Of a stretch of 64,000 bases of DNA, positions 19,209-57,218 are shown in pieces. The stretch lies in the NCBI GenBank assembly GCA_964247055.1, contig OZ176054.1, forward strand, positions 8,060,001-8,124,000, read 5' to 3'. Source of the stretch: Paragordius varius. Taxonomy: Eukaryota; Animalia; Nematomorpha. Each line of letters opens with the position of its first letter. Within the stretch, counting starts at the first letter, position 1. The notes below the pieces were generated by a model. It ran no database searches. It was not told where the DNA came from and saw only the letters and a list, made by a program, of their open reading frames with translations. A program made the translations under genes and the position numbers.

Positions 19209-19657
19209 TTAATTCTCTGCATCATTTTTATATTTTTTCCACTCATCAAAACCACCCTCATAATGTTTTACACTATAAATAGATAAAAAATTACTTTTTA
19301 TAACCCAATGATTGTGCCAGTTTTAAGGCGTCCAAACTTCTTCGACCTTTAGCACAATGAAATATAATTTCAGAATCTTTTGAAAATTTATGATCCATAA
19401 ATTCACCACATTTCAACGCAAATTTTATAAATTTTGCTATAATATTAAAAATATATACTAGGGATATTAATGGAGCCAGGAATAAGGCCAGAATGAATTA
19501 ATTCCTCAGGAGTTCGAACATCCACTATTATAGGCCTCTTTTTTTCGTTTAATATTGTCTTAAATTGGTCATAGTTCACAGTAACTTCTGAAACATTGGT
19601 AGTAGAAAAATATCTATAAGCATGTGCTTTGCGTACGTGCGCTAATAAGTTTCGCAT
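19209..19657 (-). CDS. Single-domain rhodanese/thiosulfate sulfurtransferase-like protein (TSTD/Hsp67B-like), 134 aa, 3 exons
   Basis: Exons are 19657-19459, 19436-19295 and 19272-19209, joined by two 22-nt GT-AG introns (19437-19458, 19273-19294). The spliced frame has the rhodanese motifs IVDVRTPEE, IPGSINIP, active-site loop FHCAKGRRS and HYEGGFDEW. The Arg-rich, acid-poor N-terminus resembles a mitochondrial presequence (inference). Confidence 0.9.
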
Positions 19658-19764
19658 GATGTTTTATAACAGACACACCGAAGAAAATTGACACTTTCAC
19701 AGTGCACACAAAGAATATTTTGTATATTCTGATAGATACTATAAGTGGTGTTTTTGCCTTTAAC

Positions 19765-20411
19765 CAAGGGATAGAAAAAGAGTCAACGTGACATGTGTCC
19801 AATGAAATTGAAAAATAGTACAAAATAAATCGCTTTTTCTATTTCTATCAATGTTAGTGTAATTTAAATAAAAATTAGGTTTAATTTTACCTTGAAATTA
19901 TGTGAAGACGATATTTTGCAAAAATTTTGTAAAAAAATGGCGTCGAAGTAGTTTGACATGGAACTTTTTTTCAGAAAAAAATTTATTTATATAAATTTTA
20001 TTAGGATAGAAGCATAAATTTAAATTGGGACCGTTAATTTCAGTAGTTTTTTGAAAATCCTAACTTAAATTTAGTCTGGGGTATTTGGACACCCCAATTT
20101 GAATCGAAGTGTTAAAGCTAAAATTAAAGTCAAGATTTATATAAATCACATCTACATTAATAAAAAGAGAAAGTATATTTTATTATATTTTACGACTTAA
20201 CTAGTTGTGTTGACTAATTAATTACCTTTGGTTTTTACTGCAAAATAAGTAAAAGTTAATAAAATTTTTTATATTTTGGTTCATTAATGTTATAAGTGGA
20301 AACTTTTGCCATGGCTTCATTTTTAGAAGTTTTTGATTTTTAACTGGCCTGGGCATCTAACTGGATTTCGAATCGAAGGACTTAAATGAATGTTTTTGTA
20401 TCCAAGTGTTA
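19765..20411. mobile_element. MITE family B fragments directly upstream of the rhodanese gene
   Basis: An inverted left end finishes GAATCGAAGTG-TTAA at 20114, and a right end finishes GTATCCAAGTG-TTAA at 20411. Confidence 0.75.
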
Positions 20412-20441
20412 AAATTTATATTTTTTAAAAAAACTTTGATA

Positions 20442-20638
20442 AACCGTATTTTATGATTTTGGGACATGATGAAAACGGGAAATCATCTTTAAGGAAACTA
20501 TACACTTTTTCCATAACAATATTCTAATCAAATATCTGAAATGACTGAAATTTTTATCATCATATTATTTAGAAAAACTTTTTTACAAGGTAATAAAGTG
20601 ATTTCATACCGTATCATGCAAAAACCATAAAATACGGA
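20442..20638. mobile_element. Small (about 200 bp) MITE
   Basis: Inverted termini CCGTATTTTATGATTTTG / CAAAACCATAAAATACGG. Confidence 0.55.
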
Positions 20639-21020
20639 TCATCATTGCTAAAAATTAAATTTTAATAGATATTTTCCATTTTTACAATATATATTTAATT
20701 GTCATATTTACGACATATATCATTAAAATTCTAATAGCATTCGGCATTTTTCCGAGAAAACTAACCCATTTAAAAGGAGGAGGGAAACAAAAATTTGAGA
20801 CTTCTAAAGCCCACATCTAAAAATTATAACTTTATGAAAATATTTTAAATAATAATTTTTCGAAAGAAGTCTGTTTTTACCAAAAAAAATTATTTCCCAT
20901 AATATGCTTAAATTTTGTCGTTCGACTTGTAACGATTATTTTTATCGACAGTTCAGGACCTTATATCGCAAAAAATATTTTTAGCATTCGGCCAAATTTA
21001 AAAATATGCTTTTTTTGCCT

Positions 21021-21915
21021 TTAACACTTCATAAACTTTTGGTGTTTATCCGAGAGCGATATAAAATCTGAATATCTTAAAAGTATTTAGGTATTAGGCC
21101 GGATTTAAAAATATGCTTTTGCCTTTTAGGCGCATAATACAATAAATTTTTTCAAAAATATGCAAAATTATAAATATATCCTCATCTCAAACTTTTTCGC
21201 CCCCGTTTATTTTAATTTTTTAAATGGTAATAAAATAGGAAAATAAAACTATATGGTTAGAAAATTGTATATAATTAGTTTTAGTTAGATTAAGATTTTA
21301 TAAAAAACGTTATATCTATTTATTTTAAAATTAGATGTTTAGTTTAACTGTTTTGGGGCTGTTACAATTTTAGACTCTGGAAGATATAAAACTGTAAAAA
21401 ATATAACCTTCTTTATCTAATACGGGAGAACAATATTAGATAATTATATAAACTAAAATATCTAAAACAGTAATTCATTTGCCAGATTTTTTGGAATATA
21501 AATCAACCCGAATATATGGCGGACAAAAAATAAAAGATGAAGAGCCCATGATACAATAAAGATTATTAAAATTGTAAAAAATACTCATCTCATACTTTTT
21601 CGTCGTTTATTCGTAGAACAGGCAATAAATGTGTTTTATGATTGAAAAGTATAAATAACTAACTTTGGAAAGCCTTCAAATGACTATTTACCGGGAAATT
21701 TTTGATATTTATTTATTTCAATATGAGCTCTTTGTTTCAATCGTGTTATGTATGGATTCGGAACTCTAGAAGTTAGAAAACTGTAAAAATTTAAGTTTTT
21801 TTACTAATAAAGAAGTAATTAAATTTTAATCAAAACTTTCTAAACAATAGTTTTTACCACTTTAGCTCTAAGGTGGAAAACTACCCCAACATCGAATAAA
21901 AAATGAAAATGTAAC
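21021..21915 (+). mobile_element. MITE family C, extended/duplicated copy
   Basis: Starts TTAA-CACTTCAT and contains internally duplicated family C modules. Confidence 0.65.
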
Positions 21916-22058
21916 GAGTGTCAAACTACTGGTATAAAACGAAAAATATCATGAGATGCTGATACATTTATCTATCAGAAATATATATAATATTTTATAG
22001 ATTTTATGTATTGATTCCATACAAGCGTCGTATCTGAAATTTTATCGACTCTCTAACG

Positions 22059-23465
22059 CAGCGGTACTTAAACCGCGGCCCTAAAATTGATTTTTGTGAC
22101 CCTGAATTATGTATTATAGTTTTTGATGTATTATTTTGAATATAATTATCTGCATAGTAGTACAGTTAAATTTTTTTTCGGTATTATATGGTTAATGGTT
22201 CTTGAGCCAGAAATATTTTTTGAGGCCCTTTAAATTTTGGTCAGTACCGATCTATCGTATGCACTATTTAATGGAATTTATTAAAATAGACAGATGGAAT
22301 CATATGAAATTTTGTTTTCTAGATTTTGCGTGAGCAAATTTTTAATTTTTTTTTATCCATTTGATCCGCCATCTCCGCTTTAATTTTTAGTAACGATAAA
22401 GTTCTCAACTTTTTTTCAGCCATCATGCTTCTAATATAATTTTTTATAATTTTTAACTTTGAAAATGAACGTTCCGCTGTAGCAACAGGGACTGGTAAAG
22501 TCAAATACAATAACAGCTGTTAGAACTTCGTCACGAGCTGAAATAAAATTATTGGCCACCAGATAATTAATAGCTCTCTTTGCCCTCATTGTTTATTTGA
22601 GCGATCTCATTCTTAAGTGACACCATCCAAATAGGAAAATATTCACTTAAATTGTTTGAATAAATTTTAATTTTAGCTGAATTGTTAATCTGATTTCACT
22701 CATTTTAGTTATTTTTTATGAAAGCAGAAAAGAAAACACATCCAATACATTTTAAAACCCGCAAAATCTTTTTTTTAATTAAAAAATTATAATCCAAAAT
22801 TTTATTGAAAACATTCGCTCTAAACTTATCATCTAAATCAGAATATCCATGGGCATCGGCAAGTTCGTTAATATGTCTTTTATTTGTTAAGAAAAAAATT
22901 CAGTCGCCCCTGGTTGTGAAGAAAAATATCCATTTCCTTATTAAGAAAAATATAATGTTTAAAAGGATTATATTAAAAAGTAAAGTATATTATTGCAAAT
23001 GTTATTTATAGAATGAAATTCTTTATTAGTTTGATATTTTAATAACAGAGGGAAAAAATTACCTCTATTAGAATTTTGCTTGAAATCATAAAATTGAAAT
23101 TCCAATAAAAGATAACAAATTCATAGCGTTTAATAATTTTACGACTTGAAAATTTATAATCACTTTTGTGTCAACCATCCATCATTTATTTATTTTTTAA
23201 AACTATTTTTTCATTTTTTTTTTCAATGTGTTAATTGGAGATAAAGATGGAATATCATAATGAAAAAAATGCATTTTTTCGCTCTTCGTTTCAATCGATA
23301 ACAATTTATATATTGTAATAATACAATCAAGCAATCTTTACTTACATATTCAGTAAATAAAAAAGTTAATAGTCCCGCAAGCCCAAAAATGTTAATGAAA
23401 TAAAGGCCTGTGTTTTGTCTAGTACCCCCCGCACTGCTCTCCCTAGCTCCCCTTAGCTTCGCCAC
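22059..23465 (-). mobile_element. Internally deleted hAT element with dimerisation-domain remnant
   Basis: ORF 22319-22510 encodes LTLPVPVATAERSFSKLKIIKNYIRSMM, the hAT C-terminal dimerisation motif. A hAT-like terminus CAGTGGCGAAGCTAAGGGG lies at 23465 on the minus strand. The other end (CAGCGGTACTTAA, 22059) matches only weakly. Confidence 0.7.
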
Positions 23466-23964
23466 TGACCCAAGCGTGTTAAGCGATAGTTTATAAAATC
23501 ACAAGAGAAATTATTGAGCCTCTGACATTATACCCCGATATCGCAATTATTAATAGGTAAAAACACAAATAAAAACAATCAAAAATATTTAATTTGGTTA
23601 CATTAAATGTGTGCAACGAGCGAAATTCTAAATTTTGCAATTAGCAAACATCAACACGCAGCCCTCCGATTTATGTGCCGCCCGCGTAGAATTTGAAAAT
23701 TAATATTTCTAAAAATTTTCTAAATTAGTTTATCCTATAAAGAACTAAAAAAATTTATTATTGCGTTTGATTTTTGCAGTCTTATGTTTTAAATGCTCAA
23801 ATAATTTCGAATGCGGCCCGCGAAGTGTTTCGGGTCGCATATGGATTATAACAAACCCATATTTTTACAAATTACTTCTCTACGCCTTTATAATTTATTT
23901 TTGTTAGAATATAAAAGCTTTAATATTAAAATTTTGGAACACACTATTCCAAATATTAAAATAT

Positions 23965-26136
23965 ATGAAGATGTTGTTTTTAGCAATTATATTGCACACT
24001 ACTTTTGTCAGTGGAAATGGAATCAAACAAAAGGGTATACTCTTACTAAATCATTAATGAAACATGCGGATATGTTTATATTTATCATGTACTTTTATAG
24101 CTGAAAACTGGTTAAATAACGCAACAGTAGAATCAAGTTACCGCATTACAAATGCTACCAGATCTAATCATTATAATAACAACAACCAATCAAATTTTGC
24201 AGGCCCAAAGAATTTTACAGTAATCCGTCCCTTGACATCGCGTATAGTTGTGAGATCCGGGAAAGAGGCAAGACTCGAAAAAAGTTTGGGATTAGTGCAT
24301 AAAGATATTCATTTACACAATCAATATCAATGGGTGGATCCTGATCTTAAAAACACCTTCAAAACCATAATCAAAGATAAAAACTTTATACTAATCCTTA
24401 TTGGTGTATTGGGATGCATAGCCCTCATAATTGTGTCAGCCATTATGTTTTTGGGTGCAAAACGGTTACGTCGACATCACTGTGGTCATTTGGAAATCCC
24501 ACGTCAAGCTCTGACAGATTGCATGAGTTGTATAGCTAATGCAAATAGTAGGTTAACCCACCGTCTTAATGCAAAACGGAATAATTCAACAGTCAGTGGA
24601 TGGTCCAGATCAGGAGCACCTAGCTCTCATGTGTTTGGCAGACTCGGGGCAAATATTAAAACTAATAATAATGATAAAATTAATAATAATCCAACTTCAA
24701 CCAACACTAATTTACATAACGATGAACTTGAAGAGGAAAATGAATTTATGATAAATAGCCCTACTGTATTTAGCGGGGAACGATTTCGGCATAAACGTGG
24801 GATAAAACATTTGCCTTGGACAACCTTTCACAAAGTATGTTTTTTTGTTATAAGGTTTGTAATAAAAGGGTGAATGCCTTATGCATTATGCCTATAAAAT
24901 ATAGCCTCACCCCTAAATTAAAAAATAACAATATAAGCTGTATGCAATCTATTTCAAATCAAAAATTCCATTTTATAAAATGCCAAAAAATGTTACCGAT
25001 ACTAATGCCGATTTTAGATTAAAAACAAATAAAAAAGTTTTGTGAATGCTTTTTGCCTTATCAGGAGTCATATCACACATATTTGTAGTTTATATAGTCC
25101 TCGTACTTAACTGAAAAACCGGAAGCCTGTGTACTCGAAAAAATCGCATAGAATATAACGCACGAAAATTTTATTCGATAAAATTTTAAATTTTTTTAGA
25201 TTCCTTAGCTATTTGAGAAAAATATTATCTTTTTCAATCGAGGGCTTCCGATTAATTTTTTTAGGACCTTATATATTGCAATATAATTATTTTCTTTTAT
25301 ATCCTTAAATTCTGAACGATATTATAATGATTTTATTTATTAGAACGCAAATTCACCAATGAAAAGTTCCTTATTTTACAGGGTAATATATTTAAATTTT
25401 TTATAAAAAATACTTTTTGCAAAATTGATAAATATACCCTAACATTATTCATTGATTTTTTTATGCTTGCATTCATTAAATTTTGTTGTTGCATATCCTA
25501 TTTTTTCATTAATGACCATTTCACTTTTTTGTCCACGATGGCATATTGGGATTTATATCTCAGAGATTATGGTTAAAATTTTATTATCAAAGATTGTCTC
25601 TTGTATTAGATAAAAAAATTATAAGTTTTATAACTTCTCGAGTCCAAACTTGGAACAGCTCCAAAACACGATTAAACTAAATAGCTGACATTTTAAAATC
25701 ATTTAATAAGTTTTTGCTGGTTAAATGCAATTTGAAAGCTTAAATTATTAAATTTTATAACTATAATATACATTTATTTGTCTATTAGCGATCTAATTTT
25801 CATAGAAAAAATGGCGGCGAAATAAATGAGAATTTTTTTCCTATTTTAGATTTTTTAAAAAATTTGTATTATGTATCTAAAAGGCTAAAGAAATCATATT
25901 TTTGAATTTGGCCCAATAAAAATATATTTTAAGCTATTGAAATATCAAATCGTTTTGGGATATAAACTATCTCAAAAGGTAATTAATACTTTACGAAAGT
26001 AAAGGTATGTATGCATGATCATCTTTGGTGTTTATATTAATTATTTTATATATTGTGTTACTAGTCTGATAGATGGATGAAATCCTTGAAAAGATTAGAT
26101 ACGAAAACGGGCAAAAATCCAGTTTCTGGCCAATAA
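23965..26136 (+). CDS. Orphan type I membrane glycoprotein, about 291 aa (signal peptide, N-glycosylation sequons, one TM helix, cytoplasmic tail)
   Basis: Exon 1 (23965-24034) encodes MKMLFLAIILHTTFVSG. A phase-1 intron (24035-24100) leads to exon 2 (24101-24834), which has NAT/NQS/NFT sequons and the TM segment FILILIGVLGCIALIIVSAIMFLGA followed by KRLRR. A GTATGT donor at 24835 is phase-compatible with a putative last exon at 26065-26136 (SDRWMKSLKRLDTKTGKNPVSGQ*), which is less certain. Confidence 0.65.
25590..25995 (-). mobile_element. MITE family C copy (inside the putative orphan-gene intron)
   Basis: Homologous to 12933-13456 (GGAACAGCTCCAAAAC, AAAAAATGGCGGCG). Confidence 0.65.
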
Positions 26137-27472: not shown

Positions 27473-27880
27473 TTAGTCAGAGATTTTTATCGGAGTTACA
27501 ATCGGCGCTTTTCTAGCAGCGGATGTTTTGGGATATTCTTTTTTTTGCATTAGGACGATCTTTTGATTGTGCCACGGTGATTCAGGTGTAAGTACATTTA
27601 CTAGATTGTTTAAAAAAGGTATTTCCTGTATAAAAATGTTTTCTTCGCGAAATGTAGTAAGTCCATAACCCAAGAGTTTTATTCGAAATGCTTTTTCCAA
27701 CAGTAACCTTGTCTGTTTCTTTGCAAATGATTGTTTTAAAATAACCAGTGACAAAAGTTTGCCCTTTAAATGTTTTTGTTAGTACCATCTGTAAGTTATT
27801 ATAAAACTTGAATTCGTCATCGAGTGAAACGATTGTAGGGGCAGAGGCCTGAATTTTATAAGCCTGATGTAATTTATCCG
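27473..27880 (-). CDS. Last two exons of an unidentified protein-coding gene
   Basis: There is an acceptor CCCTAG at 27881. Exon 27880-27786 joins exon 27763-27473 through a 22-nt GT-AG intron (27764-27785), which merges two separate ORF-track frames into one 128-codon frame ending at TAA. Upstream exons were not resolved and would lie beyond the mariner at 27900-28880. Confidence 0.5.
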
Positions 27881-27899
27881 CTAGGGGTTATTAAAAGCA

Positions 27900-31135: not shown

Positions 31136-31186
31136 CAATATCTTTGGTTGGTTGAAAGGGCACTCACTCATTCCTTATTGTAAAGC

Positions 31187-34100
31187 ATGACAATCTCACA
31201 AGAAAGAAAAGCAAAAACTAGGGCTGGGAAAATATTTTTACTTAGCAAAGAATCAAAAATAATTGAGAATGACAAAAAAACTATTTTCATAAAAGGAGAA
31301 ACAGCTAATGATGCAACTACTCGCATTTTAAAAGATTTATTTTCATTAAAAAAACAAGATGGTAAATATTTTGGCAAGAAGAATCCAATATGTCCATTTG
31401 AAAATTCGGTTCCTCTGGTAAATTTAATGTAAAAGTATAGGAATTTATATGCGATAAAAATGACACTTCCATGTTTGTATTTGGTTCCCATTCTAAAAAA
31501 CGTCCTAATAATATAGTTATTGGTATGTGTATAATTATTTTAAAGGTCGTATGTTTGATAAACACTTGTTAGATATCTATGAGTTTGGAATCCATAATTA
31601 CAAAGGAATCAGTCAATTTTCAGTTTAAATATTTATAATATTAGGTTCCAAAAGTTACACAAGGCATAAAGCCAATATTGTCCTTTAATGGATTGAGGTT
31701 TGAAAGTGACCCTAAAATGAAACGACTTAAAAATTTGTTAATAGGTTTATAATTTTTATATTTTATAGATATATTTAAAGGTCCTAAAGTCGAGCAAATA
31801 GCTGTCAATGGACTGGAACATGTTTTGTCATTTACATGTGAGGAATTAAATGACGTCGTTTATTTCCGTAGTTATAGAATGTAAGTCTAATATAATTTGC
31901 TAAGTGCATTCTTATCTTTTTCTCTCGATTCTAATTACGTAGTTAATTTATTCATTTCGATTTTTTTATAAATATAGTAAAAAAATACACAATACTAAAT
32001 TCTTAGTGAATTTTCGTCTTGGGAAAAAGTTATTAAAAATCTGCCAGATAGGTTCATATTATAATACAATATTATATATTCAAAAATTTATATAGTTCAA
32101 TCCGATCAAATCAGACTGATTGCTGTAAAATTGAATTTAAATAACACTAGACAACAAATTTTAACTTTTTTAACTGCCATTCGTGTAAATTTAAAATTAA
32201 TTTCATTAAAGTACATAATTAGTATATCTGAAAAGAAAATTGGTCTAGCATGCAAGAATTTTTTTATATTAGTTATCGATAATTTTTGGCCCCGATTTAA
32301 CATTAAACTCGAAATTTCGAAAATTAAAAGTTTTAGATATGAAGCCATGTATTTTATATCATTCGAAAGAGCGCAAAAAACTGCACCTTTTAAATGGTAG
32401 TAAGTCATTTAAATCAATCCGATGTAAAAGTTATTTGGATTTAAATGGTCGAAATTTTCAATCCTTAAATAAGTCAAGAATTTTCACAGACAAACTAATT
32501 TAAAAATCATATAAATTATTTAAATATAATTATTAGGGTTATATTAGTATTTAATTTAATAAAAATGTTTGAAAAAATTTTTGGTTTGCTTTTTTAAAAA
32601 AATTATTGTTATCATATATATTTTACCTAGTGGATACTAAAATGCATAGTTATAACTGAAAATTTATTACATAATGGCTATAAAAGATCAAAAATACCTT
32701 AAACTTTGTTTTTATCTTTAAAATTTTGAAATTATCAGCCTCGTAAAGAAAATAAATTAATATTGATGAGATGGTAATTTTTAAAAAACAAAATACTTAA
32801 AAATGGCTGTTTTGAGTGACATAAAAGCAATAAAAAATGTTTTAATCAACCGTAGAGACGCAATCTATTAGTTTGGATGATTTTATCGGTTTTTTAATGA
32901 AAGTTGGTATTTTTGGTGTACGAAAGCAGCTTTTGAGTATTCGACTTTCACTAGTTAGGAGTTTTGTTTAATTATTATTATTATAGCAAAATCGTCGTCG
33001 ATTTATTGCTTTTTCGAAGGTATATTTTCTCCAGTTTATTCGATTTGTAAGCGAGTGCTGTTAGCTGTTGTAAAGAAAAATTGGTTTCTTTGGTTAGGTT
33101 TTCGATTCAGCGCATCTTGCAGCGTCAACGTTTCCTGGATCCTTCGACCTTACTGTCATTAGTTGGAATTCCAAGTCATTAGTTCTGGTAATGTGACCAA
33201 AGTATGATAATTTCATTTTGAGGCACATGCCGATCAGGTGTATCTCGGGATTTATTTGGTCAAGGATTACGGTGTTCTTTATTTTGTCTTTCCAGGTGAT
33301 TTGTAGTATCTTCCGCCAGACCACATTTCAAAGGCATTAATGTATCTATCCTTTTTTATTGTCCAACCTTCGGACGCGTATAGCATGCTAGGAAACATTA
33401 GGGATTTGAATAATCGGATTTTTTTTGAGTTTGATGTCGTGTGACGACCATAGTTTATTATATTTTATCAATTTTTGTCTTAGCAATTCCTATTCTTCTT
33501 CTGATGTCGGGGTGCTGTTGTTGGTCGTATTTATAAAACTGCCTAGGTAAGTGTATTGGGAGACTACTTCTATTTTTTGGTTGTGAAAGGATAAGTTGTT
33601 ATAGTGGTTCTGAGCGTTTATAATCAGAATTTTAGTTTTTTTAAAGTTGATCGTCAGACCGAATTTTTGACATTCAGTTGAAAATTTTGTTAAGAGTTTT
33701 TTTAGGTTGATGGGCGCTTAATTATTCCCCAAACAACAAATCGGGGCGGTACAACCACATCCCCGAACTCATTCGTTTTATCCCAATTCATATCCTAACT
33801 GATTCATCGCATTCCCCCAAGATTGGTGAAAATCAATACTCATCCCCATCTTGAAAAAAGGCGATCCTAAATCATTTAACAACTATAGAACTATAGCGCT
33901 AATCAACCAAGCCTCAAAAGTTTTTCTCAAAATAATTCACAGGCGTATCAGGGCATAATTGCCGAACTTTTTAACACCCAAGCGGGATTTAGAACCAATC
34001 GCGGATGCAGGGACATGATCAGCAATATACGCTGGATATTCGAAAAACAAATCGAATTTCAGAAAGAAACCCATATTTGCTTCATTGATTTTTCAAAAGC

Positions 34101-36402
34101 CTTCGACAGCGTGAAGTACGACACGCTGTGGAAGCACTATCTCAGATGGGAGTATCAGATCATATTATAAACATCATCAAATCCCTTTACTCCAATTCAT
34201 CATTAACCATAAAACCCCCACACGGCACAAGTAATTGGATACGAATGAGTAATGGTTTACGCCAAGGATGCGTCCTCTCACCGACTCTTTTTAACGCTTG
34301 CATAGAAAGTGTATTAAGAAATATAGATAAAGCTAATGGCATAAGCATCGCCGGCAATATTATATCATCACTTCACTATGCCGACGATACTATACTGCTG
34401 TCAAATTCAGTGGTCAATTTAAAAAAACTCTTAACAGAATTTTCATTTGAATGTCAAAAATTTGGACTGACGATCAACTTTAAAAAAAACTAAAATTATG
34501 ATTATAAACGCTCAGAATCATTAAAACAATTTACCCTTGTTTGATTAGTTTTGTTATGCCCAAGTTTCAGAACCATAGGTAAGATCTGGTCTTATTCCTG
34601 CTTTGTAGAGATACCATTTATTATTATTGTTATTATTTTTGTATTGGAAATCATATCTAATTATATTATATCCAACCTTGTTGTATTTTTCTTTTAATAG
34701 CCTTTTATAGGCTGCCCTGGGATAATATGACATCTTTTAGATAAACAAAAGAGTCTATCAATTCGATATTATGACCATTAATTTTAAGTAACTTTAGTGG
34801 ATTAAAATTATTATTACTGGGTTCAAACAATTTAAACATTTAGAATTTATTGCATTTGTTGAATATCTGGGTGTTTCCCTTTCACTCGTTATCATTATTT
34901 TTGTTTTTGTCGGGTTTATAATCCTTCCATATTGTTCTAGGCATTTTTTCCACTTGGTATATTTATCTACCATAAATATACATATATATATATATATTTA
35001 TATACTCATAGATAATATAAAATTCTCATGGTGCCTTTGGGTTTGGGTCTTCCGAGTGTTATAAGAGAATTAATGCCATTTTTATCGCACCTGCTCCATA
35101 TAAAAATATGGCAAAATTTGCGCCTATTTTGATAAATTATTTTTTTTTGTGGCATGATATATTTTAGTGATATTTTTTGGGATGAAGCACTTAGCTTTCA
35201 CCAAAAAAAATTTACAAATGTGGGCAAATTTTGCCATTTTTTAAATAATAATCACAAAAGTGGCCACCATGTTAATACTGATACATTTTTATCTGAGCAT
35301 ATATATTTCATTAGGATTTTTTAATAGCCCCACTTTTGTGCGTAGTGTATATGGTATCGTATCACACCAATGAGAATATCACATTATGGCCATTGTTAAG
35401 TTAAGGTTTTGAATGCAGTCAATTAAGGAAATGCTATATGCGATATAAAGTCTACCTTTTTGAATACTTCTAATAATGTTTACACTTTTAATTCATAAAT
35501 ATAAAATAAATTATAATTTGACTATCATAAAATAAATTTTTATACAATATTTTAATATTTTTGTTGTTTTTTATAGCCGTTACCGTCAGGGTTAGAAGTA
35601 TTTATAACCCGCCAGATCCTACACTAGTAGTAACAATAAGAACTTTTTGACAAAACATTGGACTTATCTTTGATACATTTAAATGACATATTTCTAAAAA
35701 AGTGGTAAAAATTCATTATCATTTATTATGTATGGTGTATTTTCCTATACCAATAATTATTATATTACTTAACAATACTGCCTAGTCCATAATAAGTTGA
35801 ATAATTAATTTTAACCTGTATATATCTATTTTTAGCGATACACAACACAAAGCTACTGGACCTTGCGAATTAACTGAAATTGGTCCCAGGATGGATATGC
35901 ATCTCAGGCGCTTTAACATTGCATCGGATGATTTATTTAAGAAGGCTTTGAAAATCCCTAAACAACTCAAAGTATTTGTTTGCTTTTTAGAAAATTTATT
36001 TGTTTTATAAATTCCTATGTGGTTTAGATTCTATCCCATATTTTATTTCATATATACAATCCGCTCATCAATTTATCGATAATTTATTTTTAAATTATAA
36101 ATGTGTTTAAAACTGTAGTTCATTAATAATTTCTTTTTTCAAACCACCTATTTTATTGCCTCTAGGCTAAAAAGATCAAAAACATATCGTATGACGAGGA
36201 GGGTACTAGATTTGCTCGTATTCATATTAAACAACAAAATTTGAGCGCTTTAAGGAGCCGTAAAATCAAAGGCTTACACAAACAAGCTCCAGGTAGTTCT
36301 GATGGATTAACAGAAGCTGGAACCAACAGAGGTCCATTCCCACCTATCTTCAAGAAAAACATTGAGAAAATCAATAAATTGTGCGAAAAAATGGAGGTGT
36401 AA
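31187..36402 (+). CDS. RPF2: Ribosome production factor 2 homolog (Brix domain), 324 aa, 7 exons
   Basis: Exons: 31187-31417, 31441-31522, 31546-31622, 31645-31744, 31769-31880, 35836-35971, 36166-36402 (975 nt, phases consistent). Introns are 23, 23, 22, 24, 3955 and 194 nt. Motifs FGSHSKKRPNNIVIGRMFD, LIDIFKGP, VYFRSYR, ELTEIGPRMD, IASDDLFK and RIHIKQQNL match RPF2 from memory. Confidence 0.95.
33060..34520. mobile_element. RTE-like LINE remnant with inverted 5' part (in RPF2 intron 5)
   Basis: Plus strand 33720-34520 has the RT core (FIDFSKAFDSV, GLRQGCVLSP, YADD). Minus strand 33712-33060 has the C-terminal part (LSYFGHITR). About 100 bp is shared between the two pieces. Confidence 0.85.
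34540..34970 (-). mobile_element. Fragment of a second LINE family (same family as 62020-63180)
   Basis: Minus strand encodes KWKKCLEQYG.IINPTKTKIMI and LYKAGIRPDLTYGSETW. Confidence 0.7.
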
Positions 36403-37534: not shown

Positions 37535-38195
<661 letters not shown>

Positions 38196-45902: not shown

Positions 45903-48900
45903 ATGTATCGGGTGCCCCAACAAAACACTTACTTATCCAGAAGGGCTAAAGAAAAGCTTCGAAAGCTTGAGTTCAAAATTTTGGTATCAGCCGTGGTTGG
46001 TACAGTATTTGGATTATTCCTTATGTGTATAGCGGTGGGTACGACCTATTGGACCAGTTTGAAAATGCCCAAACCCCATTACATCAATGAAACTAACAAC
46101 TATTTTTTATCATCCCACTCAGGGCTTTGGAAGTACTGTATAACGTCTCGCAACACGACAAAGTATCGTTTTTCAAAACCTATGCCCGTAGAAAGTAAAC
46201 ATCTTTTTTATATATTTTACCAAAATTTGAATTGAATATAATTTGATATATTATTGTGGATGGAGTGATTTTATTTTTAGATTTTTTTCGTTTTTGTCTA
46301 ATTATATAATGTATGTTTTAATATATGATGGGATAAAGTAGGATTTATATAAAATAATAAGTTTTTAGTTGGTTTATTTTACAAAACTTAATTGAATTAA
46401 TTATTCATTGTGTTTTATACATTAAATATAAAATGCTGAATAATTAAGCACGCTACTTACACTACATCAAGTTTTTCTTTACATAAATTTTAGTGTCAAA
46501 ATTTAATGCGTTTGATTTGATATATTTTTAGATTATATGGTTTTTTTACTTTCCTAATTACTTGATTAAAAATCTTAATGACATATCCAAAAAAATTGTC
46601 ATTAACTTTTGAGATATGACAATTGCTTGATGATCGCTTCTGCTTAACAAATAAAAAATTAGATTCCATAATTTTAGTATATTTGAAGTATCAGATATTA
46701 AACATTAAAGTTAATGGATCTTCCCATTAGAATTCCCTTAGGGGAATTACTTAAAGTATCTTCCAAATTTAGTGGATAGTGCATAACCCTTAAACACTTC
46801 AAAACCATTCTCTAAGTTTTGGACTGTCCTCACAGAATTATGTTAAATGAATTAACTTTTATATTTTTTTATTCGTTTTTTTTTTCTTAAGCGTACACAT
46901 GCAGATTTAAAAAATTTAAATAATTTTTTCATCTAATTAACATATATTTTTTTGCCTAAAAATAATGATTAAATTAAATTAAATCTGTTTCAGATATTTT
47001 ATTTGTTTTTAGTTTTTGCTGATAAGATTTGTAAAACATTGAATACATCAAGTCAATTAATCATATATATTAATCATAACCCAAATATTCTAAAGACAGA
47101 ATATGTAAGATGAAGATTTTGTTTACAACCTTAATTCAAACAAATAAGTACACCTAGAAAGCCATAAAAGATAAGCTCTTTATTTCAATGGATATTTTTT
47201 TATATCTATACTGCGTTCTGCTTTAAGATTTTTAAAAAGTACAGGTTTTTACATCTTACCATCACCCCAAATCAGTGAGAAACACATTAAATCCGCATTT
47301 ACTTTGCCAACACAAATTTAGCTTAAAGAATCTAAGGATTTATCGCAAAAAATATTATTTGAAAATCGAAAAAGTGCACATGACAAATTTAGATTAATTT
47401 TCATTATTAATAATCCTACATCTCAGAATCATTAGAAACTGAGAAGTGATAAACAAACCTAAAATATTTAAATTCATACAGCAATTAGATAGGATATACC
47501 CTTTATCAAAGTAGGTTCTTAACAATATTCGCGAAAATATATTGTAAACTAGGATATATATATATATATATAATATTTTTCTTAATATTTAAGTTACGTA
47601 CAATATTGTTGTTTCGGTGGCTTACGATTAACAACTTTGCAATTTTCTAGGGAAACTTTCTCTATTTTGTTAAGGCCTTTACCAAAGTGTGAATTTATAC
47701 AAAAATATAATATGTCATCCATCCAACGGGTCTATATTGCTAGTATCCCAAAATAAGAGGTCTTTGAAGAATTCGTTAGGCGTATCAGTTTTATATCTCA
47801 CTGACTTCCTTCATTAATTATTCGCAAAGAGCTATGATAAAATCGAATAGAATTTTAACGGTTAATGGACTATAAGCCACCAAACATTTGTTAACCAGTC
47901 TAATACATCAGTTAAATATAAAATACACACTAGGGATCATATTTTTTTATATTTTTTAAATTTGACGGGCCCGGTGGTAAAGAACCCTGGAATACCAACG
48001 ATGAATTTTTGTAAGATTTACTAAAATTAAATTACCAGCTGAAATCATCAGTGACTACCAGTTTAACTAAGAGAAGTCAGCGAAAAGACAGACGAGTGAC
48101 ACATTCAACGATAAACATACACAAGTTGTGTCTATAAAAAACTAGTCTTATCATTATCCTTTAGAAATTATATGTTAAATTTATGCCTGAAAAAGAACAT
48201 TTGGGGTCGCCTATGAATTAACACATGTCAGAAATATACGAAATAAGAGTTATGAAAGAGTGTGGCGCTGTGCTACACCACATGACTGCTTACATTATGT
48301 GCAAGAGTTATTAAATCCAACTCAAATTTAACAACAATTAGAAGAATTATATGTATTATAAAAAAACAATTAATAGTTGTTACCACCAAAGGGAAAGACC
48401 AATAAACATTGGTAAATAGGTTTCACACCTTTAAATGAACGTGATATCCATAATCGCAAAGTGACTGGTAAAATCCTGTTCAACACGAAAAATCATTTTT
48501 GCATCAAATTGGAACGAGTAACGAAAAGTGGCTTTATTTTGAATCCAAAACGGAAAAAAATCGTGGCTTTTATTTTGCCAAGCCGGTCCATCAACATCAA
48601 TGCCAAATCGTTTTTACAAGAAGATCATGCTCTGTGCCTATGTATCATATGAACTTTTGAAACCCGGTGAAACCGTTAATACACAACTCTATGCCAACAA
48701 ATTATTAATATAAACCATGCATTAATCGAAAAACGACCGGAATAAACCAGAAGACATGGCAAAGCGATTTTATCACATGACAATGCTCCCTTCACATAGC
48801 AAAACCAGTGAGTTAAAATCGTTTCGATGGATAATTCTCTCACACCCGCTGCTCTAGCAGCACTTCAATAACTTTGAACGTGGAAAATGGCTTAACCAAT

Positions 48901-51386
48901 GGTTTTCCGAAAAAGACAATCAATTTTTATGGCATGACATTTATATATTAACTGAGAGATGGGCAAATATGTAGAATCCTATACAATAAAATAAATAATG
49001 GATTTTCTTTAAAAATTACACATTTTTTTTGGAAAAACCGGTAAAAACATTTGACTACACCTGGTAAATATTATATAAAAAACAAAAACGCGCTGCCGCC
49101 AGCATTGGATAACATTTATGCCTCCACTAAAATACTAACCCCATATTTTGCAACTTTTATAAAGTCCATAAATATTTACGAAATCTAAAAAAAATAGTCT
49201 TAGCGTTTTTACATGTAAATAATTATGAAACCAATATCAGCTAAAGGAGAGAAATTTTTACAGATTAATAAGTAATATATACCATATAATGTCCATAAAA
49301 ATAATTAATCATATATATATGATACATATAAATTGGCGCATATGAAGCTTTTAATATTGTAACATTAAATAGATTGACCCTTTTAGCGATATTTTTCCTT
49401 AGAACTAATACATTCCCTTTTTTCCATAAACATATTTTAGTGGCATTGCAAATTTTTATGAATTGTATTTCCTTTTCAAAACAAATTACCGGATGACCTT
49501 ATATATTGTCAAAAAAATTTTTATGGTTTTATGGTGATACCAGTATAATTTTATTTTATATTATTATGTTGTTGACAGCAAAGTAAACATGAATAGAAAC
49601 GTAGAATTTTTTGCTGTGGAAAGCAAATAAAATTTAATGTTGCAGTTAATAAAGAATAATCATTAATCTTAATTAAGTTTGGTTTAATATTTCCTTTTTG
49701 AGTCAAAAATATATAGAATTTATATTTTTTTTATTTTAGCCAACTGTTTTTCTCACCCAATGTTTCCGACACCGGAAGAAATAGCCACTAACCCTAGAAC
49801 GGATGAAACAAGCCTACGTATACAACTTTTAATTAATTTGGACCATTTTAAATCTCTTTTAAAAAGGCCAAAATTGAATTTTTACTGCATATTACAAATA
49901 ATAAAAATTATAAATTTTGTAATTGATGATCTCAAATATTTTCGATTATAATATTTATGATAGTAAAATGAGTTTTTTCTCCAAAGATTTATATATTTTA
50001 CACGTTTACCAAATAATTACCCGATTTGATCTTTAAAAAATTTTCACATCATGATTTCTTTGTTATTTGACTCGCTTTTCTGGTAATTTGTTTTAAGATA
50101 TGCATGCCTTTACTATTTTGCCAATAAGAAAATACATATTAAAATAATTATCTAGGTTTTTTTCAAAATTAATTGTTAACTGCAACTTTTTGCCGTTACA
50201 TTTATAAATACAACAATATCAAATAAATAATATTTTTATGATTTGCCTAATTTTTTTTAATATGGGTTTTAAACGTCAAAATATCTCAAATTTTTATATT
50301 CATCTTCTTTCATCAGAAAAAATGAAAAAAAATGTAATGTATGTAATTTCTTTTTTAATTAACCCTTATTTTCCAAAATATTTTTGAATATACCATAATA
50401 TTTAATCAATATTTAGATTATAGCCGTGCTGAAGGCGCATTTGCCGTAATCACAATTTTCATTATGGTAATTTCTCACATTTTTTCCATTTATTCCTTCA
50501 AAGAACCACGTTACATGTTTAAACGGCTAGCTGGAATTCTATACTTTTTGGCTGGTAAATACGTTTTTTTACGTTTGTAATAATAAAAAAAATGTTTTTA
50601 TAGCATAACTTACTTAGATTTTAGTAATTATTATATGTTTATTATTATTAATATATTTTTTGATTGCGTGTGTGTGTTAATTAATTTTTTTAATGGATGT
50701 AACTTAATATGATGAATTGGCGAACGAACGAAAAAATTGTATAAAACTAATAGATGCCTATATTATAGAAAGTTATAATATTTTTTTAATTAAAAACATT
50801 AATAATGAGCAAAATAAAGAGATAGAAAATTTCCTGATGACAATTTTCCCATTTATTTCAATAAATAAAATAGGTTCATAGGGGACACCGTTTCTGAAAG
50901 GTTTTATATCAATAGCTGAATAATTATTGATTTCAAACACAAAATTTAACCTGCTTTTAACTTTTTTAATTTAGCAGTTATTTAAAATAAAGTGTGACAG
51001 TCCAGAAATAGTTTAATTTTCATTGATTTTGCTTTTGTAAGTAAAAAAACTGAGTCCCGAATCAGACATGAAAACAAGAAGCAATATTTTTATTATTATG
51101 TATATGGTTTGATATAAATGTGTTTAATTTCGTAGCCGCAAATTGTTTTGTTACCATTGAAATGGTCATATCCTCACATTTGTACGAAGAAAAATATTTA
51201 CCAGCCGCTTATCCTAAACATGCTATCCTTCGATACGGTTATAGTTTTTACCTGACTTGCTTGGCCCTAAGCCTGTATATTTTGGCTTGTCTTGTATTCC
51301 TTATATACTCACATAAACGGAAAGAAGATAAAGCCCTCACAGCTGAAGAAGCTATTGAGAACAGACCCATGAAAATACGGAGATAA
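45903..51386 (+). CDS. PMP22/claudin-superfamily tetraspan membrane protein (TMEM114/TMEM235/CACNG-like), 252 aa, 4 exons
   Basis: Exons are 45903-46194, 49740-49817, 50417-50554 and 51136-51386, all phase-1 compatible (759 nt). It has the claudin ECL1 signature W...GLWKYC...C, four hydrophobic segments, EPRYMFKRLAG and YGYSFYL. Introns are 3545, 599 and 581 nt. Confidence 0.88.
47130..47900. mobile_element. Possible Penelope-like RT remnant, locally scrambled
   Basis: Minus strand RWMDDILYF (about 47720) is preceded by an AN..MKEV-like trace. Plus strand shows RKP and SYHHPKSV (47150-47290), which resemble PLE RT motifs RYVDD, YRKP and S.HP. Confidence 0.35.
48035..49064 (+). mobile_element. 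Mos1-like mariner with TA target duplication (in intron 1 of the claudin-like gene)
   Basis: TA-CCAG...CACCTGG-TA termini. Contains MPEKEHL, ELLKPGETVNT, HDNAP and ERWA. Confidence 0.88.
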
Positions 51387-52298: not shown

Positions 52299-52843
52299 TT
52301 AACAGTCCATGACTTTTTGGGGTAGTTTTATATCACAGAGCGGTTTAAAATTTGAATTGAAAGGTATCTAAAGTATCAAGCCGAATTTAAAAATATGCCT
52401 ACTTCTTTTAGACAATTATAAAAGTTTTTTATCAATGTAAATTTGTAAAAAAAATTCATATCTCAAACTTTTTCGCCGCGATTTTTTACTATAATTTTTT
52501 AAAACGCTAATGCAACAGGCAAATGGATGTATATGATGGTTAAAAAATGTAAATACTTAACTTTGAAATTTTTCAGGCTACAATTTACCAGCAAAAACTT
52601 GATATATTTTAATTTTTATATCATCTGTTGATTTCAATCATGTTTTATAGCTATCCCAATTTTAGACTCTAGCAGTCACAAAACTGTATAAAATATAAGC
52701 TTTTATTTAATACATGAGAACAATGGTTGATAATTAAATTTTATCTATCTAAACAGTAGTTTATTAACAATATTGAGCTCTAGGAATAAACTAGCCCAAT
52801 ATGTCAACTAGGATAAAAAAGTGAAAAGGTCATAAAGTGTTAA
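52299..52843 (+). mobile_element. MITE family C, complete copy
   Basis: TTAA-CAGTCCATGAC...GTCATAAAGTG-TTAA. Confidence 0.8.
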
Positions 52844-54059
52844 GGTAGTTAAATATTTACAAAGACAGGTAAACATAACGATGGCATAGAAATGTTTGAT
52901 GAGTATAGGTGTTTTTAAGATTTTTGCTACAAATAAGAAACCGGTTGATTTAAACACATGTTATGTCGCGAAATATGCCTAGAGTTCAGCGAATTTACTG
53001 TTTGGATCTTAATTTATCCGTTTAAATATATTATTATTAATAAAAACAAGTCAAAAATACAGAGTTTCCTTAATATTTTGAATTATAAATAACTTGGTAA
53101 AATGTATCATGATTCTTAAGCGCTTTTTGGCGTTTATTGTTTGTTGTTTCTCAAAATCCAAAAAGCGTAAATTTAGATTTAGATGATTGTTTTTTAGGTG
53201 GATAATAATTTTCTAATGCCATAAAATTCGATTCGCAGAAAAGGTAATTGTTGACAATCGTTTAATTTCCAATTTAGGTGAATTTTTAGATAAAACACAA
53301 TATTTGACATAAATTAAAAGGCAACGAATATTTCAATTATAATTCTGAGGTGATAGAAGTGTCAGCATCATCCATTTATGTAGAAAGAGTGTTTTTAAAG
53401 AATTTAAAAGCGTTGGTCCAACAAAATATTGCTAAAAATTAAATTTTCGTAAAATGTATTCATTTTTTAAAAAAATGTTTTTTTGATTTCAAAATTTAGC
53501 ATATATTTAAAAATTTTATCGCACAATCCCATCCTTTTTGCATTTTTTTAAAAGAACTAACCCTCTTAGGAAGAGAAAAATTTGGGTTCGGAGCCAACAT
53601 CTAATAAAATATAAAATTTGTGGTTTGGTTTTTACTAAGTAGTTTATAATATATTTTAGTGATATTTGGAATAAAGCATTTACCTTTCATGTAAAAAATT
53701 TATTACAAAACATGTTGTCAAATTTTGCCATTTACTGATAAGGAGGACTTATCATAAAAAAATAAATAACTTCCTTATATCACTCGTAGCTCCAAAACCA
53801 AAAGCAACATTAGTCTTGCCAGATTTTTCTATCAAAAATATATTTCTCATCATCATATTTTGTGTACACTGCTATTTAAGCTTTGAAATATTCTTAACAT
53901 GCATTAGATAAAGTTAATTTACTAGTCAATATTAAAATACCTTCAAATTTCAAAAAACATCCTAAATTGAAAAATATATAAAATAATTGTTTCTAAAGTT
54001 AACTACTTATAGTTTTATTTATATATTTTTTACCCGTTATATTGGCGTTTTAAAAAATT

Positions 54060-56372
54060 TAACACTTTAAGTTAAATTTTTTGAATAAATTTATTATATT
54101 CCGGTTTATCAATGTTATATAAATGCAAACTTCTTCCATCGTTTTCCATATTTTTTGAAATATTTAATTTTAAATATGCTTGGGGTATCTAACCACCCCC
54201 TTTGGGTCGAAAAATTGAAATAAAATTGTTGTATCCCAGTTTTAACACTTGGATACAATACAATGATTTTACTCCTTCGATTCAGTTGGATACCCCAGGC
54301 CTGTTTAAAATTAAATACTTTAAAAAGTATGAAAGGAATCGAATCCATGGCAAAATTTTGCACTTATATAACATTAATAAACCTAAATATATAAAAAATT
54401 TTATTCAAAAATATTTGATATTAAATATTTTAAGCCAAAATCGAGAGGTAAAAATTTCGCCAACGTGACATGTGTCAAATAATAAAATTAAAAAATAATA
54501 CAAAATAAGCCGCTTCTATCAATGTTAGATGTAATTTATATTAAAATTTAGCTTTAGTTCTACCCTTAAAATTAAATGAAGACGATATTTTACAAAAATT
54601 TTGTAAAATAAAAATGGCGTCGAAGTAGTTTGAGATGGAACTTTTTTTTCAAAACAAAATTTTATCAAGATATTTTGGCATATTTATATAATTTTTATCA
54701 GGATAGAAGCATAAATTTAAATTGGGACCGTTTCCTTCAGTAGTTTTTTAAAAATCCTAATTTAAATTTAGTCTGGGGTATTTAGATACCCCAATTTAAA
54801 TCGAAGTGTTAATGAAAAAATGGCTGAAAAATAGTTTAAGATATTTTATATTAAATAATTTTATTCATTCTCTTTAAAAAGAAGCTTATCATCAATGGCC
54901 CAATATTAAAACTAATTTTAATATATTCATTAAAATCGCTCTGTAATGCAAAACTATCCCAAAATATAGTAGGGTTTTAAATTTAGACAGTGGTACTTTA
55001 CAACGGGTCCCACCAATATGCGGCCCTATAGTACTCTCTGATTACGCATTATTTATATTTTTACCAACCTTTTACGTGTCTGCAAATGTGTCGAATTATG
55101 AAGTATTAGTATTATATGGCATACGGCCCTTAAAAAATTATTTTTTGCCGCCTTTTAAATTTTTTGGTGTACCAATTTTAAAATTACTCTAGAAAATATA
55201 TATTATAGTAATTAAGGAGTATTAATTAACACTTCGATTCAATTTGGGGTATCTAAATACCCTAGACCAAATTATAGTTAAAATTTAGAAACTACTGAAG
55301 GAAACGATGCTAATTTAAATTTATGCTTCTATCCTAACAAAAATTATATAAATAAGCCCTAATCTAGATAAAATTTTGTTTTAAAAAAAATTCCATCTCT
55401 AACTACTTGGACGCCATATTTATTTTGCAAAATTTTTGCAAAATATCGTGTTCATTTATTCAAGGTATAATTAAATCTAATTTTTTATTTAAATCACATC
55501 GTGGTTTTTAGTTTTGCCAATGCACACATGTCACGTTGACTAAATTTTAACCTTTGGGTTTTCTCAAAATAAGTAATATCAAGTATTTTTGAAAAAAGTT
55601 TTTTATATGTTCCGGTTTATTAACACTTCAATTCAAATTGGGGTATCAAAATACCCCAGACTAAATTTGACTTAGGTTTTTTAAAAACTACTGAAGGAAA
55701 CGGTTTCAATTTAATTTATGCTTCTATCCTAAAAATATAAATATGCCAAATTATCTAAATTAATTTTGTTTTAAAAAAAGTTTCATGTCAAACTACTTCG
55801 ACGCCATTTTTATTTTTGCAAAATATCGTCTTCATTTAATTTTAAGGGTAAAATATAAGCTAATTTTTTATTTAAATTACTTCGATTCAAATTGGAGTAT
55901 CTAATAACCCCAGACTAAATTTAAACTATTTTTCAAAAACTACTAAAAAAACGGCCCCAATTTAAATTTATGCTTCTATCCTAAAAAATTATATAAATAT
56001 GCTAAAATATCTTAAAAAAATTTTGTTTTGAAAGAAAGTTCTATGTCAAACTACTCCGACGCCATTTTTTTGCAAAATTTTTGCAAAATATCGTCTTCAC
56101 TAAATTTTTAGGGTAAAATTAAATTTTTTATTTATATTATATCTAACATTGATAGAAAAGGAGAACCGTTTTATTTTGCATTATTTTTTTAATTTTACCA
56201 TGAATCGAAGGACTAAAATAAATGTTTTGTATCCAAGTGTTAATGTTGTAAAAGTGCAAAATTTTGCATTGGATTCGATTCTTTCCATACTTTTTAAATT
56301 ATTTAATTTTGAACACAATTACCTCAATTTGAATCGAAGGACTAAAATCAGTGTGTTGTATTCAAGCGTTAA
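54060..56372. mobile_element. Large cluster of MITE family B (one inverted full copy at 54242-54812; tandem left ends at 55230, 55622, 55880; doubled right end)
   Basis: Repeated TTAACACTT.GAT ends and GGGGTATCTAAATACCCC modules. The last TTAA is at 56369-56372, 79 bp before the RABL3 ATG. A short hAT-like piece (CAGTGGTACTTA, GCGGCCC) lies at about 54985-55150. Confidence 0.8.
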
Positions 56373-56451
56373 CAATGAGATATAAGCTTATGATAATTAT
56401 ATACGCAGCTGAAAGAGTTTAACACATTTATTTAGAAAACATGTGTAAAAT

Positions 56452-57218
56452 ATGAGCTTGAGATCAGCGAAAGTTGTGCTTTTTGGTGATTCTGGTTTAT
56501 ATTTGTATATATATTTTGGGGGTTGGAAAAACATCGTTTATAGATTCTTTATGTGACAATACAACTAGTGCTGAAAGGAAATGGACTATTGGCGCTCATG
56601 TCGATATAAAAGTCGCATTTATTTTTATCATAGTATCATATTTATAAAAATGGAAAACATGATGCTGAAGAAACTTTTATAGAACTTTGGGATATTGGCG
56701 AAAATTTAAAAAATTGTGAAAATCTATCAGTTTTCTTAAATGAATACAATGGTGTATATAATAGTTACTTTAGGGCTAATTTTCGTATATGACACCTCCA
56801 ATAAACGTAGTTTTAAAAACTTAGAAAAATGGATTCAATTTGTTGTTAAAAGCAATGAACCTTTTTTCATGTATTTAACACCCTTATTTTTAGCAAATCA
56901 GAACAACGACAATCATTTCCTCTATTTATAAATATCCCAACACTTTTTGTCGGAAACAAAGTTGATCTCTGCAATAGTCATATGTCGGCGAATCAATTAA
57001 ATTCGGCCATTTACATTAATGGGTACAAGGATGAAATATCTTACGTATTTTTATTTAAATGTTTAGAATAGTAAAAACCCAAAAAATGGATACTCCCAAA
57101 ACGATAAACTTGACACATTTTTTGATAAAGTAACAAATATATTTCAATGAAAATATAGGTTTTGGAAAATATGGATTATGTTAACAATCATTCTATTTAT
57201 AATAAAAATCGGAATTAA
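56452..57218 (+). CDS. RABL3: Rab-like protein 3, 207 aa, 7 exons
   Basis: Exons: 56452-56494, 56520-56611, 56634-56751, 56774-56870, 56894-57044, 57067-57129, 57159-57218. Introns are 25 (GT-GG), 22, 22, 23, 22 and 29 nt. Motifs KVVLFGDSGVGKTS, WTIGAHVDIK, FIELWDIG, GLIFVYDTSNKRS, IPTLFVGNKVD and KLDTFFDKV fit RABL3; there is no prenylation motif. Confidence 0.85.

Follow-up and report, generated by a model that had tools for sequence, protein, structure and literature searches.

Putative spliceosomal introns of 22-29 nucleotides at ancient animal positions in a relative of the hairworm Gordionus

A 64-kilobase (kb) stretch of DNA (contig OZ176054.1, positions 8,060,001 to 8,124,000, assembly GCA_964247055.1), referred to here as the window, carries genes for a rhodanese, RPF2, RhoA and RABL3. 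These genes are interrupted by 14 segments of 22-29 nucleotides (nt), which we call micro-introns. The segments are very probably real introns. With the same high confidence, we regard them as genuine GT-AG spliceosomal introns that occupy ancient animal positions and were shortened to about 22-24 nt in a hairworm-type lineage. Orthologous intron positions are the strongest evidence. All six micro-introns that could be compared, four in RPF2 and two in RhoA, match ordinary introns of 45-1254 nt elsewhere in both codon and phase. This indicates that ancient introns shrank in place, as the original prediction for this window had proposed.

Results

Micro-introns in four conserved genes

The four loci were read directly and the gene models were rebuilt by script, with coordinates given on the plus strand of the window (Table 1). 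The 14 micro-introns were re-derived at exact coordinates: two in rhodanese, four in RPF2, two in RhoA and six in RABL3. Their size is tightly constrained, with 13 of the 14 measuring 22-25 nt. The termini are GT-AG in 13 and GT-GG in RABL3 intron 1. Excision produces uninterrupted frames from ATG to stop of 134 (rhodanese), 324 (RPF2), 192 (RhoA) and 207 (RABL3) codons. The content of guanine and cytosine (GC) is 16.6% in the micro-introns, compared to 30-37% in the exons of the same four genes. In the window it is 23-35% throughout.

The original prediction listed 16 tiny introns. Fourteen were recovered with identical lengths. The other two are at most candidates, one in the 5' untranslated region (UTR) of RhoA and one in an 'unidentified gene', where no clear 22-nt segment is found. 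The claim that excision restores recognizable proteins in the four conserved genes is well supported by complete open reading frames (ORFs), ungapped or colinear alignments and contiguous profile coordinates.

The spliced RhoA aligns with arthropod and mollusc Rho1 in one ungapped block of 192 residues, with 92% identity. Its three exons match the Pfam Ras profile at 1-47, 48-95 and 98-160, and its coding part contains no introns other than the two micro-introns. Reading through the 24-nt intron would add 8 residues that are present in none of the listed homologues. Since this intron is a multiple of three and lacks an in-frame stop, its retention would evade nonsense surveillance and add these residues to the protein.

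The spliced RPF2 shares 59% identity with the RPF2 of Gordionus, in a colinear alignment that is ungapped at every micro-intron junction. The Gordionus protein, P0121, is RefSeq RPF2 XP_065324326 of Gordionus sp. m RMFG-2023, assembly GCA_954871325.2. Matches to the Brix profile are colinear across the window RPF2 exons (46-69, 91-119, 122-158 and 178-193).

In the rhodanese gene, both introns are micro-introns and no others are found. Exons 1 and 2 match the Pfam Rhodanese profile colinearly at 3-36 and 54-87, respectively. The exons are also colinear with rhodanese chains (TSTD1/RDL2) in the Protein Data Bank (PDB), with the catalytic HCAKGRRS loop located in exon 2. Exon 3 is too short and gave no database match.

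Table 1. Positions of genes, introns and candidate introns in the window. Coordinates are on the plus strand. The last column gives the length of the intron at the same site in RPF2 of Gordionus (G), Owenia (O) and Dendronephthya (D). CDS, coding sequence; SNP, single-nucleotide polymorphism.
Feature	Position	Strand	Properties	Same site elsewhere (nt)
Rhodanese, single-domain, TSTD1/RDL2-like	19209-19657	-	134 codons spliced; exons 19459-19657, 19295-19436, 19209-19272	
Rhodanese micro-intron 1	19437-19458	-	22 nt, GT-AG, phase 1, GC 9%	
Rhodanese micro-intron 2	19273-19294	-	22 nt, GT-AG, phase 2; excision yields GYKNVKHYEGGFDEW	
RPF2, ribosome production factor 2, Brix domain	31187-36402	+	324 codons, 7 exons	
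RPF2 micro-intron 1	31418-31440	+	23 nt, GT-AG, after CDS nt 231, phase 0	G 45, O absent, D 149
RPF2 micro-intron 2	31523-31545	+	23 nt, GT-AG, after CDS nt 313, phase 1	G 417, O 261, D 84
RPF2 micro-intron 3	31623-31644	+	22 nt, GT-AG, after CDS nt 390, phase 0	G 49, O 685, D 107
RPF2 micro-intron 4	31745-31768	+	24 nt, GT-AG, after CDS nt 490, phase 1; retention gives an in-frame stop	G 1037, O 291, D 106
RPF2 intron 5	31881-35835	+	3955 nt, GTAAGT...TTTTTAG, after CDS nt 602, phase 2	G 103, O 482, D 132
RPF2 intron 6	35972-36165	+	194 nt, GT-AG, after CDS nt 738, phase 0	G 1824, O 186, D 390
RhoA/Rho1	37535-38160	-	192 codons; coding exons 156, 150, 273 nt	
RhoA micro-intron 1	37982-38004	-	23 nt, GT-AG, after codon 52, phase 0	
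RhoA micro-intron 2	37808-37831	-	24 nt, GT-AG, after codon 102, phase 0; multiple of three, no in-frame stop	
Candidate RhoA 5' UTR intron	38174-38195	-	22-nt GT..AG segment, sequence presence only	
Claudin_2/PMP22-family gene	45903-51383	+	exons 45903-46232, 50359-50577, 51072-51383; profile 1-53, 84-137, 138-191	
RABL3 (Rab-like 3)	56452-57218	+	207 codons, 7 exons	
RABL3 micro-intron 1	56495-56519	+	25 nt, GT...GG	
RABL3 micro-intron 2	56612-56633	+	22 nt, GT-AG; SNP at 56624	
RABL3 micro-intron 3	56752-56773	+	22 nt, GT-AG	
RABL3 micro-intron 4	56871-56893	+	23 nt, GT-AG; SNP at 56875	
RABL3 micro-intron 5	57045-57066	+	22 nt, GT-AG; SNP at 57060	
RABL3 micro-intron 6	57130-57158	+	29 nt, GT-AG; SNPs at 57135, 57136, 57149	
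Neighbor of RABL3	57444-60420	-	long exons (119-170 amino-acid ORFs); ordinary intron of ~90 nt near 57700-57800 by eye	

Positions shared with ordinary introns of other animals

The coding exons of RHO in the starfish Acanthaster are 156, 150 and 273 nt long, the same as in the window RhoA. The introns between them are 311 and 1254 nt in the starfish and 23 and 24 nt here. RhoA micro-intron 1 has another counterpart in a bird RhoC, where an intron likewise follows codon 52 in phase 0. The original prediction had placed this intron at the same position as in vertebrate RHOA, which agrees with both bird RhoC and starfish RHO.

For RPF2, proteins were mapped onto the DNA of Gordionus, the annelid Owenia and the coral Dendronephthya. 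Each of the four micro-introns coincides with a longer intron in at least two of these species (Table 1). In Owenia and Dendronephthya the fifth intron is located one alignment column earlier, in an unchanged phase. The similarity to Gordionus extends to the exons, as those of 82, 77, 100 and 112 nt have identical lengths in the two genes. Because Gordionus has introns of 45-1037 nt at the sites of the four micro-introns, the shrinkage would be lineage-specific. Gordionus, Owenia and Dendronephthya have two additional 5' introns in common, which in Gordionus follow CDS nt 20 and 153. They are absent from the window, where exon 1 (31187-31417) is uninterrupted, indicating that introns were lost as well as shortened in this lineage.

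RPF2 also contains the introns of 194 and 3955 nt that had been reported from this window. A reverse transcriptase (RVT_1) fragment is located at 34089-34490, within the 3955-nt intron 5. Transposon-filled long introns thus persist in the same genes as micro-introns. This indicates that intron length is bimodal and that the genome is not uniformly compact. The proposal of tiny introns without genome compaction is in line with this intron and with further reverse transcriptase ORFs in the window, but such a combination is not unique, as the repeat-rich genome of Myxobolus rasmusseni illustrates.

Affinity to Gordionus

RPF2 also provides evidence on the identity of the genome. In a search of 1.84 billion representative proteins with RPF2 exon 1, Gordionus P0121 was the top match, with 58% identity and 90 bits, and the next match scored 67 bits. 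When Gordionus RPF2 was used as the query against a set of 5.8 billion clusters, all further proteins were at most 51% identical to it. Maximum-likelihood analysis of 22 RPF2 proteins joined the window and Gordionus as sisters with 100/100 support, among arthropods and away from two cnidarians. The tree represents one gene and contains neither myxozoans nor nematodes. The genome therefore appears to be that of a relative of Gordionus, and neither Gordionus itself nor a myxozoan.

The Gordionus montsenyensis genome has a GC content of 26.93% and 63.79% repeats (10.1101/2023.06.26.546503). Its assembly (GCA_954871325.2) resembles the window in the RPF2 intron positions and phases, in the four exon lengths, in a GC content of 26-27% and in repeat richness. 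Unlike the window RPF2, the Gordionus gene has no intron below 30 nt, the shortest measuring 45-50 nt, and it keeps the two 5' introns. No RhoA, RABL3 or rhodanese gene was found within 10 kb of Gordionus RPF2.

RABL3 and its GT-GG intron

All introns of RABL3 are micro-introns. Exons 2 and 3 match only Rab-like protein 3 in the PDB (chain 6vih), exon 2 at 46-75 and residues 2-30 of exon 3 at 77-105. Exon 3 thus starts at 76, and the 22-nt intron 2 falls between adjoining residues. Exon 4 matches the β4/α3 region of Rab GTPases, and Ras and Roc profile matches are found in the gene. Exons 5-7 are too short or divergent and gave no database match. The basis of their junctions, and of rhodanese exon 3, is the open frame and short motifs.

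Intron 1 differs from the other micro-introns at its 3' end. Joining GDSG to VGKT requires the removal of 25 nt, and a GT donor is available in just one register, which has GG at its 3' end. An AG is first reached 49 nt from the donor, and its use would remove the P-loop (GVGKTSFI) in frame. In one haplotype, from run X1, a 2-nt deletion at 56506 shortens the intron to 23 nt, and it is still GT-GG.

Polymorphism was analyzed by aligning four public runs, from three samples and two studies, to 56300-60500. Among the SNPs listed across RABL3, six are in 143 nt of intron and six are in 624 nt of exon (odds ratio 4.5, Fisher p = 0.013). Three of the exonic SNPs listed are synonymous and three are conservative (L>V, F>L and L>I). 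The higher SNP density in the micro-introns backs their identification as introns, as supporting evidence only. These runs were also considered as possible spliced RNA, with word shares of 0.58-0.65 for RABL3. This was rejected, since the contigs run through the introns. The low word shares are attributed to polymorphism.

A separate observation concerns the stretch at 56300-56440, just upstream of the RABL3 start. Its summed contig word depth is ~157,000-217,000 in X1, X3 and X4, compared to a few hundred in the gene body. In X5 the values are ~2,300 and 5, respectively. This indicates that the stretch is a very high-copy repeat, and a related copy seems to be located near 59345.

Splice signals

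In the 13 canonical micro-introns, the 5' GT is followed by A or T. At the 3' end, T is found at position -5 in 11 and at -3 in 10, followed by the AG. The AG used is in every case the first at least 20 nt from the donor, and AGs at 5, 13 and 18 are bypassed. Of the features of U12-type introns, neither the extended 5' (A/G)TATCCTT nor a TCCTTAAC branch site is found in any of the 14 micro-introns.

A mechanical scan joined ORFs across GT..AG segments of 16-70 nt and compared them with four control dinucleotide pairs. It gave no length peak. The scan was discarded as evidence, because chance swamps such a test in 27%-GC DNA. With ORF statistics uninformative, the support for the micro-introns comes from homology and intron position.

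Other features of the window

Micro-introns are not present in every gene. The Claudin_2/PMP22-family gene has kilobase-sized introns; two candidate segments in it, 27 nt at 50577-50603 and 29 nt at 51107-51135, would join ORFs. The minus-strand gene next to RABL3, which gave no significant Pfam match, has an ordinary intron. The description of tiny introns as the dominant intron class is accurate for the four genes, where they make up 14 of the 16 coding introns. It does not extend to these two genes, in which introns are ordinary or kilobase-sized.

ORFs at 17431-18159 on the plus strand appear transposase-like by eye (AYCADNT...GCAAHIIHNAIK), without a Pfam match. A candidate GT-AG segment of 26 or 29 nt, at 17690/17693-17718, joins two of them. 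At 23966-24873, also on the plus strand, a signal-peptide-like start (MKMLFLAIILHTTFVSG, from 23966) is located upstream of a 269-residue ORF with a transmembrane-like stretch. This locus may be the 'unidentified gene' of the original prediction. No clear 22-nt intron is found near the 269-residue ORF; the sole ORF-joining candidate is a GT-AG 20-mer at 24835-24854, with longer options near 24030-24100. No database record was found for this ORF. A further RVT_1 fragment is present at 62665-63186. The PHD-finger match that comes after it is weak, at E = 0.0017, and does not reach the Pfam cut-off. Rfam and tRNA scans of the window gave nothing informative on the taxon or on small nuclear RNAs (snRNAs).

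Discussion

Mechanism and alternative explanations

If the micro-introns are ancestral introns that shrank in place, they would be removed from the pre-mRNA by the ordinary major (U2-type) spliceosome via intron definition. The recognition signals would be reduced to a 5' GT(A/T), an A/T-rich body and a 3' (T)AG, positions -3 and -5 being T. That lengths cluster at about 22 nt would then point to the smallest intron that the animal spliceosome can physically process and not to a new machine, as the same minimum has been published for myxobolids. The original prediction had called for a modified spliceosome. By analogy with myxozoans, which have 22-bp (base pair) median introns and keep a conventional U2 snRNA and U2AF, such a modification would not be required.

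Several observations weigh against this interpretation. The exons contain 30 GT..AG decoys of 21-25 nt, suggesting that the splice signals that can be named are insufficient for specificity by themselves. RABL3 intron 1 lacks an AG at its 3' end. For the eight introns in RABL3 and rhodanese the evidence is protein homology, and the matches of short exons are weak (E 0.03-0.5). The contigs of the four runs are colinear with the genome through the RABL3 introns and leave the segments unchanged; the runs are thus genomic DNA and offer no RNA support. Searches for transcript-derived protein of the species itself found none. The RhoA read-through query had no match above 88% identity, and a word-indexed protein search with RPF2 exon 1 had no match. 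A second hairworm was not found with Gordionus RPF2 as the query against the 5.8 billion clusters. Neither a RhoA exon-junction 30-mer nor an exon 30-mer is present in metagenome contigs.

Some of these observations would be explained by a separate micro-intron pathway. In this pathway the 3' site would be set by its distance from the 5' site, as with a ruler, and not by the AG or a polypyrimidine tract. It would tolerate GT-GG, and U2AF/SF1-type factors would be altered or lost. The narrow range of lengths and the consistent use of the first AG beyond 20 nt, with earlier AGs bypassed, are in agreement with this model, as are the many exonic decoys and the GG end of RABL3 intron 1, which is found at the usual distance in two haplotypes. 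However, myxozoans with introns of equal size keep a conventional U2 snRNA and U2AF (PMC13644364). The same genes also carry introns with classical GTAAGT...TTTTTAG sequences, 194 and 3955 nt in length, and the single GT-GG case is a thin basis for a new pathway. We therefore consider the pathway unlikely, while selection of the 3' site by distance is a reasonable minority view. It is similarly doubtful that two splicing modes exist side by side, one measuring about 22 nt by distance, with a nearly signal-free 3' end and GT-GG usable, and a classical one for the transposon-filled kilobase introns.

The segments might never be removed from RNA, the genes being pseudogenes or carrying frameshifting insertions or assembly errors. 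The evidence for introns comes from DNA and homology, which leaves room for this possibility. However, it would need 14 insertions that all start with GT, 13 of them ending with AG, with sizes of 22-29 nt and a GC content of ~17%. The six testable segments are located exactly at ancestral intron positions and phases. The exons have remained open and are conserved, with 92% identity between RhoA and Rho1; SNPs within them are silent or cause conservative replacements, and the sequence is reproduced by independent DNA runs. These observations make the absence of splicing very improbable. Alternatively, the segments could be excised from DNA, similar to the internal eliminated sequences (IESs) of ciliates, with the assembly representing germline DNA. 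Their sizes are indeed similar to those of Paramecium IESs. Their ends, in contrast, are GT..AG and not TA..TA, and other animals have classical introns at these positions. The contigs of four DNA runs from three samples, the tissue of origin being unspecified, keep every covered segment and contain no joint that skips one. Excision at the DNA level is thus hardly conceivable. Finally, the genome could belong to a myxobolid myxozoan, in which case the 22-bp median introns would already be published. An AT-rich and repeat-rich window with a mode of ~22 nt would fit Myxobolus rasmusseni (PMC11557904, PMC13644364). Gordionus RPF2 is nevertheless by far the best match to RPF2 exon 1 (90 versus 67 bits), and the tree, which was built without a myxozoan RPF2, joins the window to Gordionus with 100/100 support, apart from two cnidarians. 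A myxobolid origin is highly improbable. Shrinkage of ancestral introns remains the interpretation that we prefer.

Comparison with known short-intron systems

Very short introns are known from several lineages. Those of chlorarachniophyte nucleomorphs are 18-21 nt long. Introns in the ciliates are about 25 nt in Paramecium and 15-16 nt in Stentor (PMC13644364). Both groups have spliceosomal introns at or below ~22 nt, showing that this size is physically possible. They differ from the window in being unicellular, with essentially all introns tiny, whereas the window is from an animal and its intron lengths are bimodal.

In the 51 animal genomes analyzed by Hadjez et al. (2026, Mol Biol Evol), introns below 30 bp were limited to the myxobolids and Dicyema japonicum (PMC13644364). 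The median intron is 27 bp in Henneguya salminicola and 22 bp in Thelohanellus kitauei and Myxobolus rasmusseni (PMC13644364). The M. rasmusseni genome is 174.6 megabases, with 68% repeats (PMC11557904). Myxobolids resemble the window in a mode of ~22 nt, GT-AG termini, reduced 5' (GTa) and 3' (AG) motifs, conserved exon junctions and a parasitic lifestyle, and M. rasmusseni is also repeat-rich. Unlike the window, they belong to Cnidaria, and their short class is the genome-wide median and is backed by Iso-Seq. The micro-introns here are from four genes, are known from DNA and occur beside introns of 194-3955 nt. Dicyema japonicum also shares animal GT-AG introns below 30 nt, conserved positions, reduced motifs and parasitism with the window (Lu et al. 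2019, PMC6736024; PMC13644364). It belongs to Spiralia and its genome is called reduced in the title of its report (PMC6736024), whereas the window has transposon-filled kilobase introns and wide intergenic DNA.

The original prediction named dicyemids and ciliates as known tiny-intron lineages, which is correct, and omitted the myxobolids with their 22-bp median (PMC13644364). It also stated that novelty would fall if the species belonged to a lineage already described with a 22-nt mode. A hairworm relative is not among the described lineages. Hadjez et al. (2026) expect further lineages and do not mention hairworms in the main text (PMC13644364). No report of introns below 30 nt in Nematomorpha was found in the Gordionus genome preprint or in hairworm-focused full-text literature searches, the scope of which did not include Cunha et al. 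2023.

Implications

Published animal cases come from the myxobolids and the dicyemids, both lineages of tiny and strongly reduced parasites. To our knowledge, animals were regarded until 2026 as lacking introns shorter than about 30 nt. If our interpretation is correct, the hairworm relative would add a third, independent animal case, without precedent among Ecdysozoa or macroscopic worms. The presence of tiny introns beside kilobase introns in one gene indicates that shrinkage does not simply follow from compaction of the whole genome. Gordionus, whose minimum at the same sites is 45-50 nt, would bracket the timing of the shrinkage and forms a natural species pair with this genome for finding what changed. 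Eleven hairworm assemblies had been deposited in GenBank by mid-2025 (10.64898/2026.02.03.703548). Standard gene finders and aligners, whose minimum intron size exceeds 22 nt, would break or miss such genes, so that gene counts and estimates of completeness for genomes of this kind might be distorted. If two splicing modes do exist, the animal would be a large and tractable system for dissecting the size limit and the signal needs of the metazoan spliceosome.

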